The notes under the pieces were generated by a model. It worked only from the letters and a program-made list of their open reading frames with translations, was not told where the DNA came from and ran no database searches. A stretch of 62,184 bases of DNA, counting the filler, from Choristocarpus tenellus KU-1152 (lineage: Eukaryota > Protista > Phaeophyceae): the NCBI GenBank assembly GCA_964200185.2. It is 10 parts of 10 records of this genome, joined end to end, with 100 filler letters (N's around TTAATTAATTAA, not from the genome) between each part and the next. Parts side by side here need not be neighbours in the genome. Positions count along the whole stretch, not along the records: positions 51,987 to 58,361 come from CAXNAD020008274.1; 9 more parts are not named here. One strand, 5' to 3'. Shown piece after piece: positions 51,839 to 59,838 of the stretch. The position numbers and the translations under genes were made by a program. The stretch's first letter is position 1, and each line of letters opens with the position of its first letter.

Positions 51839-52649
51839 GAACAGCCGATTTCAAAAATTGAGGATGGAGCTTTTCATTGAGGATAGNNNNNNNNNNNNNN
51901 NNNNNNNNNNNNNNNNNNNNNNNNNNNNNNTTAATTAATTAANNNNNNNNNNNNNNNNNNNNNNNNNNNNNNNNNNNNNNNNNNNNGTGGTTGGGTGGGG
52001 GGGGTATCATACCCACATGTGTTAGATCTTGCCTTGAGGCTTGAATATACACCAGAATGGAACAGATGGAAGCAGCGGGTTGAGAGGGGTGGGGGGAGGG
52101 GGATATAGTGATAAAGCACGAGGATAAAAGACACAAATTAAAAAAAACTTTACTGCTTGCATCTATACACTGTCTTTAAGCACTGCATTATATACAGAGG
52201 GGAACTACACACATATATATACACAAGTCTTTCAAAACTAGGGTCACAGTGGTCCTTTCCCCCCACCCACATTGCTCAGCCCCGTGCTCCGCCACTGTAG
52301 GCTGCATCCTAAGTACCATTGCCTTTTTCTCCCAGGCATCAGGCCACCCACAACAAGGAGGGCTGGCTACACATGCTACTATACAAGTGAAGAATCTGGG
52401 TCATACATTTCACGCCCAAACCTTTGTCCTATGATTCCATGGAATGCCCTGTGCAAAGGTTGAGTAAGCATAACCACCACAAAATCTCATCACCATTTCA
52501 ACCAAGTAATCTTAATGGTTGATGTAGTGCTGGGAGGGGTTTGGGGGGACGAGGGTCTCGACAATGGACATATGTTCACTTAAACATTTAGGTACTACTG
52601 AACAACATAGTTCACTCTGGAACACTGGACGAACAACCCATCAGCCCAC

Positions 52650-53882
52650 CTCCTCATAATTATCAAAAGAAGCAAGTACAGGCAGAATTTTCTTGAGTAC
52701 AGTGGCCTTGGCATCATTTTCAATAGACCCACGGTCATTCTTGCGGCTTTTCCGATAGTTATCCATCGTTGCTGCTGTCCGGAGGAAGCCAGTCTGACCC
52801 TTCTCCAATATCTCATCTTTTGCTGCCACAAGCTTGCGCTCCTCTGCTTTGAGTTCCTCCTCAAGGCCCTTGGATCATTGTCATATTTTTCAAGCGACAC
52901 GAGAGCAACATGAGGAGTACTTGGTGAACTGGTAAACCAACAGTGGTGAAATTTAGGGATAGTTGAGCTAAATGAGATAACCAAAGGGGCCATAGGTTAC
53001 GCAAATGCGCAGCATTGGGAGAAGTACACAGAACACCAGAAAGGGGTGATGGTGTTAGCCTGAACGGATAAGGGCTTGCCTGTGCTCGTATGATTCGCTA
53101 CGCATACCCCTGACGATCCTAGTAGGGGGTTAAGTACCATGTAAGTCCACGAAGTAGCATGCCAACTATTCCAGTCGTTTCGCTACTGTTTGAGCATAGA
53201 TGTCCTTCCTGTATGGAACAGCAATTACATAGCACCTCCAGTACGTGGGTTGACCTTGTACTCCTTGACATCATGTCCCAACAGCTGTTTGGGTTGAGAA
53301 GTCCTTCGATGGACAAGAAACAATGCACTTTCTGACCGAAAACGCTTGACGCCGCACCTTCTCCTCTAGTTAAGGAGTAAACTCAACTAAGTCTAGAGAC
53401 ACACCACAGTGTTGCACATTTCAACAAGGCAGTACCACTCCGCCACGTAGTTAACTCACCTTAATGATCCCCTTAACCTCTGCCAATGGATCCACTTCCT
53501 CCTCTTTCTCCTCCACGACCTCCTTTTCCTCACCCTCTCCACCCTCTACCGCCTCTTGTTCTTCACTCTCCTTGTCCTCATCCTCTCCACCATTAACTTC
53601 TTCACCGTCCCCATCCTCTCCCGTCTCCACAGTTTCCTCTTCCGTGGGCACTTCAACTTCAGCCCCATCAACTTCGGCTTGCTCTGTTGACTCTGTCACA
53701 TCTGGTTCCGCCATCAAAGGGAAACAAATATCCCGTCGCCTTGCCATGGACGGAAAAGATCGACGATTGGTCAACACATGGACCTTCGGGGCTACCCGCG
53801 GTCCTCGGAACAGAAAAGCAAAGCTCCTGACCGCAAAGCACAGGACAAGGGCGACTGCCAGCCGCATGCTCTGTGTGTTCAT
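52650..53882 (-). CDS. grpE: GrpE nucleotide-exchange factor, plastid-targeted, partial (exons 53882-53460, 52868-52650)
   Basis: Signal peptide MRLAVALVLCFAVRSFA-F, a basic transit peptide and an acidic N-terminal arm, then AAG|gtgagt...aag|GGC into GLEEELKAEERKL...FLRTAATMDNYRKSRKND...AKATVLKKILPVLASFD. This matches the GrpE 'LR..ADF.NYRKR..E...LLPV.D.F' helix. Confidence 0.85.
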
Positions 53883-54279
53883 ATTTTCAAGGTTATTTTG
53901 CTGGCTTAGCCCCTTTTGGGCAGGAGAGGACGCAATATATAGCAAGTACCAAACTCTCTATCTCAGTGTAGTCCTTCTCAACAGTTCTGTGCTCCTCTGC
54001 ACGTTCAAAGAGTGTACAGTCTGCGCGTGTATCGTTGTCAGATTTTCTGGATAAAACATGTAGGGGTTTCAACAACGAAGAGGGGAAACATGCAGTTTGA
54101 ACTGCCCACTCGGCTATTTTTTGTTTTTCCTATACAACAATATCGAATTAATATTTAAAATAGTATGGGAGTACAGTATTGTTACAAATTGAACAACATA
54201 ATAGGCTTAGTACAGGCAACGCATGTACTGTGTAATCAGTGCGAGAGGATCATCCAGGAATCGCCAAACCGCAGAGATC
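53883..54279. promoter_or_regulatory. Probable bidirectional promoter / 5' UTRs between divergent genes
   Basis: Only 397 bp separate the two divergent start codons within one contig; there is an AT-rich core at ~54115-54165. Confidence 0.5.
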
Positions 54280-55831
54280 ATGGGAATTTCGCTTGCGCTT
54301 GGGATATCTGTCTTCATCCTCGCGCTCTGCCCTGGGGTAGGCTTTGCACCTCATGTGACCACGGGTACAGTCATCACTGCAGCCAAGGCGAGTCAGAAAT
54401 TGCGAGCTGATCACTATGGTAGACAGCTTCTCAAGCATCAATGCCAGGAGTACACCGAGCGGTGGTTTCGCCTTCGAGCCCATCCATCCACCGAATTGCC
54501 CAAGTCAAACCCAGATATGGAAGCGAGTAAGGGGTTAAATGTCGATGGTGCCAGAACCATCTTGGAGGAGCTCCTAGATCGGTGTAAGGAAGCTACGCGA
54601 TCCAAGGGTGCCATGGAGTCTTCTCACACAGGTTCAAGCGAGTGGGCGGGGTTTCGAACCACTCCTGAACTCCTTCAGGTAACGTGATCTAACGCTGTAG
54701 ATAAGCTGTGCCACCTCTTGCGAAATTGTTGCGTACATAACCTAGGGTGTTCCTCACCCCCTACCACATCTTGTTGCAAAGTCTTGATCCGCACCAAAAG
54801 CGCAGTAGTATCCGCCTTATGTAGACAATTTGCTGGATATATCCCTTCTGCAATATCACTGAGATTCCTCTGCCTAACAACATCCTCACGAAGCAGGGAG
54901 TCAGTTCTACCTTGGCACGAATCTTCTCCCGATCTCGGCGTTCAGATGGAACCGCCTTGTGCTGGTCTTGGCTGACACTCGCCCCTCAACCTTCGCGCAT
55001 TGAGATCGCCAGTGACCCTCGGTTTTCTATCTTCGTCACTGTGTTACCAGCAGGAAATGGCAGTCCCCCTTCCCACCGCCCAATATTTGGATCTCAGATC
55101 ATGTCCCGTGTTCTGTCCGGGGAGGTGGAGCAGGTGGGGGGGAAAAAACTGCCATTTTTTCTTTAGTTTTTTCTAGATATATTCGCATTTTGCCCCAGTC
55201 TACTGCTGCTGCTACTTCTTGTGAGGTTGGACGCTAAATTCGCGGTAGCGCTGCAGTTGTCATGTGCTTACTACTCTTGAATCTGGTTCTTCCTGTCCAC
55301 CTTAAGTGAAGGGCCAATAACTTGTGAAAAATGCTCAACTTACCAGACAATCATCATCCCTCTGGCCATGGAACAGTAAATTTCAACCCTAGTGTGTTGC
55401 CTGCAGTACCCACATGCTCTAGGGTTCAACCCAATGCTGGCAACACTCTGATGTAACTAACTCCAGTAGATAGCACCATTTAGTGTGTCTGAAACCTATT
55501 CCCCTCCGCCACCCTCTGCACTTATTTCCCCCCCAACCATATCTCTGTGCTGAACGTCTGACCCCGTACCAGCTCAAGTCCTCTTCCCCTTCCCCTGTAC
55601 CCCTTTGGAGTGAAGGTGAAAGCCAATAGCCAGAGGATAATTGGTAGAAGTCATCACTCCACAGAGACTCCTGTATGGTCTAGCTACGGTGGTGGAGGTG
55701 AGAAAATCAAGCTCTACTTGCAAATACCATTTACCGCCAGGATTACGTATCGCTGTAACTGTTTTTTTGCAATACTCTTGAAGGATATCTCTCTGGTCCA
55801 CACCTTTTTTTTTTCAAATCAGCTTACCCCC

Positions 55832-55863
<32 letters not shown>

Positions 55864-56438
55864 ACCCCCCCCCCCCCACCCCCCTTTTTTTTTTCAAACC
55901 CCCTCCCCCCCCCCCCCCCCCCCCCCCCCACCACCAATTCCCTACACCCCTATCAGTACGTCGTTTGGTGAACGAAGGCTTTCAGCCTGCAGTGGTCCTA
56001 GAGGTTGTGTTCTATGACTGGTCACGGGGGTCAGGCTACATTGGAGGTTACGCAGCAATGCCCAGCGGGTCTGGGAATGCAGAACGCCTATTGGACGGTC
56101 AGAACGAAGCCAGCGGTGGTTCTACTGGTACTGGTGAAAGTGAGCAAGGGAGGCTCTTGATCCTCAGTACCAGCCCCTGTGACCCTCACCTTCTTCTTCG
56201 GGACGGGGATATCTATGAAGAGGAAGAGGAGGGGGAAGGCGGGGAGACAGGGGAGGATTTGATCCTCGTGAGGAGAGACGGAAAGGTTGTCCCGGGGCGG
56301 GGGGGGGAAGTGGGAGAGGGAGAAATGGGGGAGGATGTGCTTTCAGCGAAGGAGTTGGGAATGGAGGTTGGAGGACTGGATGAGCAGCTGGAGGACATTG
56401 TGAGAAGAGTGCTTGCTACACGTTCTTTGCCGATGGAG
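54280..56438 (+). CDS. Plastid-targeted protein: degenerate PCO/ADO-like cupin followed by the start of an NSF/Sec18-like AAA+ domain, partial (exons 54280-54678, 54897-55133, 55616-55697, 55957-56438)
   Basis: Four phase-compatible exons (phases 0, 0, 1, 0). The N-terminus is MGISLALGISVFILALCPGVG-FAP. The last exon ends LGMEVGGLDEQLEDIVRRVLATRSLPME|gtgagt, matching the NSF D1 lead-in '[25 protein letters not shown]'. The Walker A exon is not in this contig. Confidence 0.75.
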
Positions 56439-56841
56439 GTGAGTCCTGGGTCTCCTTGGGAATGGACAATTGTTGTAATTGCTCCGATAGTCCCCGAGAT
56501 AGAGCGTGAATTACTGTAGTGATTTGACCAGATGTGAGGGGCAATATATGTCTTGATTATGCAAGACTAGAGGATGTGGAGTATGGAACTCGTTCTGTTG
56601 GAGAATTGAATGTACTGGTTGTGTTGGGGTCTCTTGTGCAGTGAAACACGCTTCGCCAACTCCGGTGTATGATTGAGCAGCCCAGAGCTTGACCTTCATT
56701 GCACCCATAACCCTATCCTCTCATCCTTCAATGTATAGTACGTGGTTAGTAATATCCTGAGCTATAACCCTGATCATATCCTTAGTTCGCATCCCCGGCC
56801 TTAACTGGAGTAGTAGTAACAATGCCAAGAAATAAAAGAAA

Positions 56842-56917
56842 ATACATTGATATTGTATACATTGATATTGTATATATTGATATTGTATACATTGATATTG
56901 TATACATTGATATTGTA
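56842..56917. repeat. 15-bp minisatellite (ATACATTGATATTGT)x5
   Basis: Directly visible; it produces the spurious ILYTL repeat ORF. Confidence 0.9.
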
Positions 56918-57561
56918 CTCTGGAGTGTTATACTTAGGTCACAAACAGTTCCATTTATGCCGTTGTAATGCTGACAATCATAACAGTAGGCACAATGAAC
57001 CTACTACAGAGCGTGTATTCTTTTTTCGTGGCAGTTACACTGATGATATTGGCCGATCTTTTTGGCAGACCAGTGCCTACCTGCCCTGGTTACCAACAAC
57101 GCTTGCTTGTATCGTTTGTAACGGCTACACCGGGGTATCAAACAGGTTATTTGTGGTAGTCACCTGGACACGGACCTGTGGGTACTGCAACAGTTGTTGT
57201 CAGGCACCGCCAACACACCTCCTACCCCTTACTGGCACCTACCCTAACCCTACCCTGACCCTACCCTAAACCTACCCTAACCCTGACCTTGTTCTGGGAA
57301 GAGTCGCCTGACGTTGAAGAAGAGTTGTGTGGTGTGTCTTTGTTGAAGTTGAAGGAGCTATCGGCAGGCGCTAAAGAGGTGTTACGGGATGATGGTGGGT
57401 GGATGCATATGGACAAAAACACCGATACCTCGTTGTCTACGGTGATGTTAAGTCTGTTGTTTTCATTGTAGTGCACTATTCGTAGGTCAGACCTGTCCGC
57501 CGATCGATTATTATTCTGTTCAACCCTACTTTAACAGCTGTATCCCTCCTCCACTACAGGA

Positions 57562-57760
57562 GTTAGGGTTAGGGTTAGGGTTAGGGTCGAGTTCAGTGAA
57601 AGGAAGTCCTGCACCGCTTGTAGTTAGTTCTCTTGTTGAGAGGGAGCTCCTTGTGATAGCGCAGGCGTTGGCAAGTAGTTGGAATGCGTTCCGGCGGTGC
57701 TTTTCTGCAGCAGATTCAATCGTGTTCCCATAGAATGGCGATCACCTTGACCTATACCGT
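57562..57760 (-). mobile_element. Possible 3' end of a non-LTR element abutting telomeric repeats
   Basis: Minus-strand ...SAAEKHRRNAFQLLANACAITRSSL... is followed by (CCCTAA)n. The resemblance to RLE-element C-termini is weak. Confidence 0.3.
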
Positions 57761-58285
57761 GGAGACTCCGTTGGGGAATTTTCTTTGGGGTGTCTTTGTG
57801 GACTGCAAATAAAGTGAGACCATTTTTTTTTGGGGGGGGGGGAAGAGTAGCGGGCTATGCACAGGGCATGGATTGGGAAAGGTAGGTGGGTAAAGTTTCA
57901 ATGGAGGGGGAGTGTGTACATGAGCATGGAGGGCAGTAAGAAGGGGGATCTGGTAAGACTTCCTATGCTGGAGTTGCTTAGTTCCCTCAACTCAGCTTTG
58001 TTGAGTTAGGGTTGGGGTTAGGTATTGGACAACCAGACTACGGAGGTACCTAACCCTAACTCTAACCCCTTCCCCTAACATTGGGAAAGTGCTTTCCTAG
58101 TGCATCTGAATTAGTTGAAGTAGCTGCGGCGAGAGAGGGATGTGCGTCTCTGATGTCAAAAGATGTAACCAGAATCCTATGAAAGGGTGCTATGGACGGA
58201 AGGCGTATGGGTAGGGTTAGGGTTAGGGTGGAGTTCAATTTCACGGTGGAGGGAGAAGTTTTGCAACCTTGGCAATGAAGAGAGG

Positions 58286-58318
<33 letters not shown>

Positions 58319-59838
58319 GGGGGGGGGGAAAGAGCACCGAGTCTAAAGTGCATTGTTGGTGNNNNNNNNNNNNNNNNNNNNNNNNNNNNNNNNNNNNNNN
58401 NNNNNTTAATTAATTAANNNNNNNNNNNNNNNNNNNNNNNNNNNNNNNNNNNNNNNNNNNNGGTCCGGGGGGGAGAGGGGTGGGAGGGGTCGGGGGGGGG
58501 GGAGATCTTCAGGTCTCAATAGTGGGTAAAAATCAGATAAGATGGTACGGCATGAATGTCTCCTACAGTTCGAGTTGCACAAGGAGTGGAAATGAATGTG
58601 TTCAATTAAAAAGAAGATATATGAATAATATGCTGCATTTCCCTCATTGTTAATTATAAAAGATAAATATATATATATATATATATAATTTTTTTATGGA
58701 CATATAGTTGTCTAGGGAGATGCCGATTGTATAGATGAGCCCTGAACCATATCAGAAAAATGTGCACTTTGCTGAACCTAAGTACATAATGTAACGATGA
58801 ACGCATCACGTCCTAGTCAACTCACCGGCAGCTACGACTGTTCTAGACTACTACATGCACGTTACACATTCTAGCCCTTATAGAACCCATCCAGACTAGT
58901 CTCTGCCAGATTGCACAAGGCAATGTTGAGAATGGTGCATGAACAATGTTTGAGCAACGGGTTGATCCCTGACAAGGGGTGGGAATGTCGACTTGAGAAT
59001 ACAGGTACGCCACAGACATTGGATAGAGGTGATCTTCAACAACCTTCCAAGGTAAGAGAAGTTCAAGAACGCACAGAGGGGGGAGGATAGACCCAAGGCT
59101 GGACGCCTCAACGGACTCCAGGATTTATAGCATCCCCAAAGGGACTTACTTATCTATGGTAATATCAACCAAGGCATCTTCGATCGTTCTGAATCCCGTC
59201 GCAAATTTTGTTTGTTTTCTTGAATGAAACGTTTTTTAATGAGTAGATCACCAAATCAGAAAATTAGATAGTCCGATATATCGTTTTGATCTGCCATCAC
59301 AATGGAACCAAAACAGAATAAGCTTTTGGTCATTTTCTCCCACTCCATTACATGACGGACGGGTAGTCACGCGCGATCTATCCTCTTTTACACCGTCCTA
59401 TCCACTGTTCAATGTTTTCTGACATTTCTCTTTGCTTGCACTCAATTCCATGCAAGGAACAGACACGAGTATTGTGCTGTGGACCTATTGGTAATCAATC
59501 ATCCTCTCAGGTCTTCTTGTTTCTCACTTCCCAACATCCCTAATAACAAATGACCCTTTCGGAACCTTGTACAATAATCACCATGCCCGTACCCGAAATG
59601 TACCTCACCCCCCCCATAGTATGGCAAGGCAATACCTCTAGAAGAAGATTGACTATGTACACATATCTAATTGAAAGTATCTTCCACAGTAGTAGGGCTC
59701 AATACACGTACGAACAATCAAGGTGAATATATTTGAACCCTTCATTCTCTACAGCACTGCCTTCCTAGATTATATCATCACTCTCTACCAATTTCTTTCT
59801 AAACCTGAGAGTAGACACAAATGCCTGCACACACTTCG

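Follow-up and report, generated by a model that had tools for sequence, protein, structure and literature searches.

In a 62,184-nucleotide stretch of DNA from the brown alga Choristocarpus tenellus (the window, filler included), positions 51987-58361 are a eukaryotic contig of 6.4 kb with GT-AG introns. On balance it is probable that the plus strand of this contig carries, from 54223 or 54280 to 56438, the 5′ half of a genuine nuclear gene that is expressed and encodes a plastid-addressed paralogue of NSF. The predicted protein starts with a plastid-type presequence, continues into a cupin-like N-domain in which the metal site seems to be lost, and then enters an NSF-type AAA+ motor. Our confidence in this explanation as a whole blends those for the gene and its architecture, for the fold, and for function and location, and comes out somewhat better than even. 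Taken by themselves, the gene and its architecture are very probably as described here.

Exons 1-4 lie in one plus-strand frame, as modelled from splice signals and frames. Exon 1 (54223 or 54280 to 54678) encodes the presequence and the first N-domain helices, and is defined by its open reading frame, by a spliced contig of the RNA-like run X3 described below and by the structure of the public protein model P0001. Exon 2 (54897-55133; frame, tblastn, X3 contig and family alignments) contributes the middle strands of the cupin-like barrel, among them VLPAGNGSPPSHRP, which is what is left of cupin motif 1. Exon 3 (55616-55697; frame, tblastn and X3 contig) encodes VKANSQRIIGRSHHSTETPVWSSYGGG and ends in phase 1. 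Exon 4 (55957-56438; frame and tblastn, with the X3 contig over 55955-56283) encodes the last barrel strands (GVRRLVNEGFQPAVVLEVVFYD), an acidic, Gly-rich linker and the start of the AAA part, and GTGAGT stands at 56439, directly 3′ of it.

Three public sequencing runs of one study cover the stretch, two of them DNA-like (X1 and X2) and one RNA-like (X3). A spliced X3 contig of 1155 nucleotides and depth 52 starts at 54170, ends at 56283 and joins 54678 to 54897, 55133 to 55616 and 55697 to 55957; its joints skip the 218 nucleotides of intron 1 (54679-54896, GT..AG), the 482 of intron 2 (55134-55615) and the 259 of intron 3 (55698-55956), all on the plus strand. Since this contig joins across all three introns, and since X3 depth within intron 2 falls to zero (55226-55557), the first four exons are on one transcript. 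Intron 3 also holds two long poly-C tracts, found by a tandem-repeat scan at 55827-55884 (58 nucleotides) and 55899-55929 (31 nucleotides), and all X1 and X2 DNA contigs break at these tracts (55827-55929).

Identical exon junctions are present in P0001, the public protein model of this contig (Choristocarpus tenellus, partial, 367 residues), which was the first of 14 proteins in a HMMER scan with exon 4 and matched it with 100% identity. This model was used as the spliced protein throughout, while alignment rows for the other loci were entered exon by exon. When the Ectocarpus orthologue P0017 was used as a tblastn query, the exon borders in the brown-algal loci L004 and L005 were also identical to those in the window. 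An earlier note on this DNA, made from the sequence alone, had quoted peptide strings that are present at the positions it gave. It had placed the start at 54280; the public model uses the upstream in-frame ATG at 54223, and the hydrophobic core and GVG/FAP are kept either way. The final V that it had assigned to exon 4 comes from intron read-through, and the exon ends in ...SLPME. The full transcript was recovered in part, with exons 1-4 spliced together and the part past 56283, within exon 4, lying outside the spliced X3 contig.

The N-domain (P0001 residues 110-293, 54550-56060 on the plus strand, spliced over exons 1-4) was delimited by an AlphaFold2 (AF2) model, structure searches and hhalign. 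The AF2 input was a 19-row alignment that included the second lineage described below and exon pieces of L004 and L005, and the model has three N-terminal helices and seven strands (predicted template modelling score, pTM, 0.62). A Foldseek search of this model against the PDB returned PCO4, PCO5, PCO2, ADO and CDO on top, with E 2.8e-7 and TM scores of 0.57-0.60. VIA-align, which is independent of Foldseek and was run on 48,161 representative chains, gave thiol dioxygenases as its top six matches, with 143-158 aligned residues: PCO4 (Z 13.0), ADO (12.8), 3-mercaptopropionate dioxygenase (MDO, 12.8), Bacillus subtilis CDO (12.3), mercaptosuccinate dioxygenase (12.1) and rat CDO (11.9). Ordinary cupins in the same scan had Z values of 10.0 or less and about 100 aligned residues. 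A shape search of the ESM Atlas with the N-domain led to CDO_I and PCO_ADO clusters (TM 0.57-0.63), and language-model feature searches, which we treat as leads only, led to CDO_I clusters at scores of 0.91 with the Ectocarpus domain and 0.86 with the diverged domain of L012.

These predictions make it likely that the N-domain has the fold of a thiol-dioxygenase-type cupin (PCO/ADO/CDO/MDO). As both groups have tied Z values, no distinction between PCO/ADO and CDO/MDO can be drawn. The earlier idea of a cysteine-oxidase-like cupin is upheld as far as the thiol-dioxygenase fold goes, on AF2, Foldseek, VIA-align and the Atlas, with PCO/ADO and CDO/MDO equally near; the combined AlphaFold and Foldseek check did predict a cupin fold, with PCO, ADO and CDO as the nearest structures. 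Between the barrel and the motor lies a linker (56061-56357, plus strand) that is variable and Gly/Ser/Glu-rich. Family alignments reveal in it a conserved block, SPCDPHLLLRDGDIYEEEEE...LILVRRDG, of which P, C, P, L, R and 'L.R..G' are invariant across all lineages compared.

From the residue mapping, it seems that this barrel has lost its catalytic equipment. The comparison set consisted of 24 bacterial thiol dioxygenases retrieved through a degenerate DNA pattern encoding G-Q-x-[TS]-P-[IV]-H-D-H, and hhalign aligned the N-domain with the profile of these sequences at weak scores (E 0.013-0.024) but collinearly over 150-174 columns, covering both cupin motifs. In motif 1, VLPAGNGSPP-SHRP pairs with W.PGQ.TPIHDH, so that the first ligand His corresponds to a gap or Pro and the second to the His of PPxHR, which only the brown-algal and second-lineage proteins retain; the intron-poor relatives have Lys and Asn at the two HxH positions. 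In motif 2, GGGVRRLVN pairs with ..DIH.V.N, and the third ligand His corresponds to the first Arg, which is invariant. Further on, AVVLEVV pairs with IsLHvY, with Glu and Val where the bacterial sequences invariably have His and Tyr, which we take to be members of the Ser-His-Tyr triad of CDO. Brown-algal and second-lineage sequences share two invariant His, those of PPxHR and RxxH. Taken over the whole family, in the brown-algal and the intron-poor alignments alike, no His is conserved, and the Arg of GG..R is. We infer from these pairings that neither the three-His iron site nor the Ser-His-Tyr triad is kept, and that the cupin would be a pseudo-enzyme. The loss of ligands that the earlier note had read (one His left, the third replaced by Arg) agrees with this, on a weak collinear profile alignment and the lack of any family-wide His.

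The motor begins at 56358-56438 (plus strand), where the first 27 residues (GMEVGGLDEQLEDIVRRVLATRSLPME) align to the start of D1 in P0017, a protein of 673 residues from Ectocarpus siliculosus that its source names 'vesicle-fusing ATPase'. P0017 residues 366-607 align with residues 222-456 of NSF D1 at 254 bits in one stretch, while Cdc48/p97 reaches about 250 bits only in two stretches. Since NSF is the best and only collinear match, the motor is, as judged by alignment, an NSF paralogue and not Cdc48. The symbiont-derived Cdc48 of the SELMA system had also been considered as its identity, and was rejected on the collinear best match to NSF and on the lower score per domain of Cdc48 in its two stretches. 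D1 of P0017 carries the GGLD..DI.RR...R..P start, a GPPGCGKT Walker A, a FDEIDA Walker B, GMTNR and the RPGR arginine fingers, and an aromatic pore loop is found in P0017 (K-W-VGE) and in L002 (K-F-VGE). With all motifs intact, D1 in the orthologues is predicted to be ATPase-competent. In L004 and L005 the next exon, reading ..ALGV.HVRGLLL(H/Y)GPPGCGKT.., follows about 330-420 bp past exon 4. The intron-poor L012 is collinear with NSF residues 183-640, from D1 into D2, as a single HMMER domain. Upstream of the motor, none of the NSF/Cdc48 N-domain families was matched in Pfam, and the PDB alignment to NSF begins only at the N-D1 linker, residue 183. At the other end, the brown-algal proteins and L002 have only a short basic tail beyond the D1 lid and no D2; the intron-poor L011 and L012 have a degenerate D2 that is collinear with that of NSF but without GxxGxGKT at the aligned position.

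In addition to the motor and the barrel, the presequence is shared. Read by eye, it opens with a signal peptide that is hydrophobic and small at positions -3 and -1, followed by Phe at +1 (GVG/FAP) and then a transit-peptide-like stretch; the signal-peptide core MGISLALGISVFILALCPGVG followed by this Phe (54280-54345, plus strand) has the form of the ochrophyte-type plastid-targeting motif with an aromatic +1 residue. The same layout recurs in the relatives (Ectocarpus AAA/FVT, L002 AHA/W, L012 VHG/F, L015 ASA/FNF and L010 VHG/FSS), a signal peptide with an aromatic residue is present in every full-length member, and the orthologues P0016, P0018, P0021, L002, L010, L012, L014 and L015 all have this arrangement. 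The bipartite presequence that had been proposed is hence seen, again by eye, in all lineages compared. In diatoms and cryptophytes, an aromatic +1 residue marks nucleus-encoded proteins that cross all plastid membranes. By this rule, the Phe at +1 would carry the protein beyond the periplastidial compartment into the plastid proper, and the signal peptide with its Phe motif argues against a cytosolic location. The models of P0017 and of P0015 (EukProt) are without the signal peptide that is seen in the sister-species proteins P0016, P0018 and P0021 (MAPSFVSVAAAVSVLSHCMGHAAA followed by F); the annotation of the 5′ end is probably wrong in both, and database records would then fail to show the plastid address.

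The architecture is not confined to Choristocarpus. Orthologues with 56-73% identity are found in Laminaria digitata and several Ectocarpus species. A second lineage, L001 and L002 from a JGI metagenome, is 38-48% identical and has the same order of parts; nearby on the same contigs are a WD40-repeat gene and a CGLD27-like gene (PF06799; L001 6710-7243, L002 6869-7357). A further 11 metagenome loci were found with the family pattern QL[ED][DE]I[VTA]RRV. Since they have few or no introns, these intron-poor relatives are probably diatoms. Two of them, L011 and L012, contain the whole protein of about 950 residues as one uninterrupted open reading frame, and the earlier claim that the cupin and AAA parts belong to one protein is confirmed in these relatives by their single frames. 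That the combination might be an artefact of gene fusion was considered as well, and was rejected on the spliced contig and the single frames of L011 and L012. The search for the same architecture in other organisms thus yielded brown algae, the second lineage and the intron-poor contigs. In four of the latter (L008, L009, L010 and L015), the N-domain contains an intron right after LPKG(A), inside cupin motif 1, at a position absent from the brown-algal introns. Word-based protein searches with P0003 residues 1-300 and P0017 residues 88-245 returned brown algae only, one with exon 2 alone returned no match, and a metagenome scan with N-domain motifs returned no confirmed locus.

As for what such a protein might do, we propose only tentatively, as a reading with somewhat less than an even chance, that it is a plastid unfoldase in which a pseudo-enzyme domain selects the substrates. 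The barrel would replace the SNAP-binding N-domain of NSF as a module for recognition of substrates or adaptors; the protein would form a ring, and ATP use by D1 would pull apart or unfold plastid proteins or complexes. A more specific version has the dead barrel recognising a free N-terminal Cys, or another thiol- or carboxylate-bearing terminus exposed after removal of the transit peptide, and handing it to the motor. We consider this version a long shot. If it were true, the invariant Arg at the third-ligand position would bind the acidic or oxidised group of the ligand, and plastids would possess an N-terminus-reading unfoldase separate from ClpS/Clp and perhaps linked to plastid redox or oxygen status.

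Several results weigh against the picture of a plastid NSF paralogue with a dead thiol-dioxygenase head, and they are best considered together with the alternatives on which they bear. The fold depends on a single model of modest confidence, with a predicted local distance difference test score (pLDDT) of 57 and 62 residues below 50, and the whole-protein AF2 model has a pLDDT of only 31. No N-domain match was found in Pfam with the exons, P0001 or P0017:95-250 at E ≤10, nor with the L012 N-part or L002 exon 1 at E ≤1; in the positive control, 22 of the 24 bacterial thiol dioxygenases matched CDO_I. Searches of PDB sequences by phmmer and hmmsearch at E ≤10 (exon 4, alignments A3 and A6, and P0001:180-300) were also without a match. 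The hhalign scores behind the residue mapping are weak (E 0.013-0.17, probability 2-3%), which makes that mapping provisional, and a feature-search score of 0.91 is reached by shuffled proteins in 4-10% of cases. Homology between the brown-algal and the intron-poor N-domains is likewise weak by hhalign (E 0.027); their kinship is based on the collinear motifs EW.G[FW], R[IV].[IV], [IV]L..LP.G, G[SC]...L.G..E, GG..R and LEVV and on their position before an orthologous D1.

The low pLDDT, the empty Pfam and PDB sequence searches, the small hhalign probability and the shuffled-protein scores could all be accommodated if the N-domain were a generic or convergent beta-barrel without kinship to thiol dioxygenases, its structural matches being due to a low-confidence model. 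We regard this as unlikely, since two independent aligners place six different thiol dioxygenases on top, aligned over about 150 residues, where other cupins align over about 100 and trail by 2-3 in Z, and since the Atlas shape search and two feature searches on members that are 40% diverged give the same families. Moreover, the hhalign alignment, weak as it is, remains collinear and reaches both cupin motifs.

The absence of D2 from the brown-algal proteins also counts among these adverse points, because D2 holds the NSF hexamer together and the assembly of a ring is left unexplained. One could also imagine that the job of NSF has been kept and that the protein is a membrane-fusion or SNARE-like disassembly factor of the periplastidial compartment or the chloroplast endoplasmic reticulum (ER), serving the vesicular network around complex plastids. 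D1 is indeed very close to that of NSF, the collinearity of the intron-poor form with NSF extends into D2, and a signal peptide alone would bring the protein to the ER lumen or the outermost plastid compartment. However, the domain that binds SNAP and SNARE proteins is gone, with a cupin in its place, and the aromatic +1 residue in all lineages marks onward import and not periplastidial retention; a retained fusion role is accordingly quite improbable in our estimate.

Still less probable is that the cupin is an active enzyme with a non-canonical metal site, formed for example by one His each from PPSHRP and RSHHS, that couples thiol oxidation or oxygen sensing to unfolding. The invariance of the PPxHR and RxxH His in the brown-algal and second-lineage sequences, one of them aligning with the second His of motif 1, would fit such a site, but the intron-poor relatives have neither of them (ARYQFKW), Arg takes the place of the third ligand throughout, and Glu and Val occupy the positions of the Ser-His-Tyr triad.

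The remaining adverse points concern the 3′ end of the gene. The earlier proposal of an NSF-derived motor with a Walker A further downstream holds in the orthologues, including the single uninterrupted frames; in the window itself only 27 residues of the motor are present. No AAA exon was found between 56439 and the contig end at 58361 (tblastn with P0017, no match past 56441), so the Walker A can be checked in the orthologues only. What follows exon 4 is the start of intron 4 (56439-58361, plus strand), which runs through repeats to the contig end without an AAA exon, as delineated by tblastn with P0017, a tandem-repeat scan, contig breaks and read depth. The donor at 56438/56439 is supported by the same exon end in L004 and L005 alone, without transcript support here, and X3 reads pass through it unspliced at about one fifth of the exon depth. 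An X3 contig of depth 10 (56412-56829) is unspliced across this donor; if translated, it would run into a stop codon at 56517-56519, beyond ...SLPMEVSPGSPWEW..., and yield the cupin with no motor attached. Such a contig may stem from pre-mRNA that retains a long intron full of repeats, or it may be a genuine short isoform. That the locus is a truncated or decaying copy, with N-domain exons running into repeats and no AAA part, would suit the 1.9 kb past exon 4 without an AAA exon (against about 330-420 bp in L004 and L005), the unspliced X3 reads at depth 10 and the partial mark of the public model, but is most improbable given four exons that are open, spliced and expressed at depth 52, a sequence that shares 56-69% identity with its orthologues, the D1 start included, and a contig end in the kind of high-copy repeats where assemblies break.

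Downstream of exon 4, the contig contains a 15-mer tandem array (56842-56917) and short TTAGGG/CCCTAA-type blocks at 57238-57284, 57562-57587, 58049-68 and 58212-29 that border high-copy repeats. Positions 58212 and 58229 are the exact points at which the loose ends of dozens of Logan contigs lie. Read depth climbs to 150-480 past about 57716, within high-copy repeats, and DNA contigs break there. The blocks look like interstitial telomere-like repeats around a dispersed element, and the stop of the assembly at 58361 is ascribed to these repeats or to this high-copy element.

Upstream, a neighbouring gene (52641-53882, minus strand) is arranged head-to-head with the NSF-like gene, its ATG at 53882 being about 340 bp from the ATG at 54223. 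Its product has a signal peptide with AVRS/FAF and a long acidic stretch, the second exon gives a Pfam match to GrpE (E 1e-4), and by these features the protein is probably a plastid-targeted GrpE. In X3 it is spliced (from about 53459 to about 52867) and has a depth of 475, against 52 for the NSF-like gene. In the orthologue loci examined, no GrpE neighbour was found beside the orthologue.

The gene itself is not new, since its proteins are in public databases under generic names; it is the reading of the N-domain and the destination that appear to be new. A survey of the whole Cdc48/NSF family covers the SELMA copies of Cdc48 and reports that NSF is almost never lost, with no plastid NSF paralogue mentioned (PMC5070193), and the main text of the paper on the ancestral plastid proteome of ochrophytes does not mention NSF, AAA or cupin (PMC5462543). 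Our literature search on plastid NSF, on an NSF-like plastid protein, or on a cupin or thiol-dioxygenase pseudo-enzyme attached to an AAA+ protein found no relevant paper, in line with the earlier suggestion that the architecture is undescribed; likewise, no description of the combination of a cupin with AAA+ was found. If our reading is correct, a copy of NSF has come to lie behind the plastid signal-peptide barrier in at least three sequence groups, its head exchanged for a catalytically dead thiol-dioxygenase fold. Thiol dioxygenases that have become pseudo-enzymes are rare, and this would be one of them; the little-known machinery for proteostasis and biogenesis of complex plastids would also gain a candidate chaperone or unfoldase.

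Among known systems, SELMA offers a parallel in location, since there, too, an AAA+ protein of the Cdc48/NSF family is sent behind the signal-peptide barrier of the ochrophyte plastid (PMC5070193). The new family differs from it in being closest to NSF and in having another N-domain, and, to judge from its Phe at +1, it may be destined for a place deeper inside than the periplastidial compartment. The cupins of CENP-C, Mif2 and Cnp3 have barrels that appear in the same list of structural matches (Z 8.8-9.2), by which no kinship is implied; they are shorter and without the N-terminal helices of the thiol dioxygenases. These cupins are without a catalytic metal site and act as dimerisation domains of kinetochore proteins. 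With the thiol dioxygenases (PCO1-5, ADO, CDO and MDO; PF07847 and PF05995), the N-domain shares the predicted fold, including the N-terminal helices, and a collinear layout of motifs, but it has no Pfam match and, by the weak profile alignment, neither the three-His site nor the Ser-His-Tyr triad. Members of the thiol-dioxygenase family are, to our knowledge, stand-alone enzymes, and the solved chains that were matched are 154-246 residues long, whereas the N-domain is fused to an AAA+ motor. NSF is regarded as the dedicated, cytosolic SNARE-recycling machine of eukaryotes. Like NSF/Sec18, the new family has an NSF-type D1 motor, and its intron-poor members are collinear with NSF into D2; unlike it, D2 is absent in the brown algae and the second lineage and is without a Walker A in the intron-poor forms, the N-domain of double-psi barrel and alpha-beta parts has given way to a predicted thiol-dioxygenase-like cupin, and a plastid-type presequence precedes a protein whose NSF counterpart is cytosolic.

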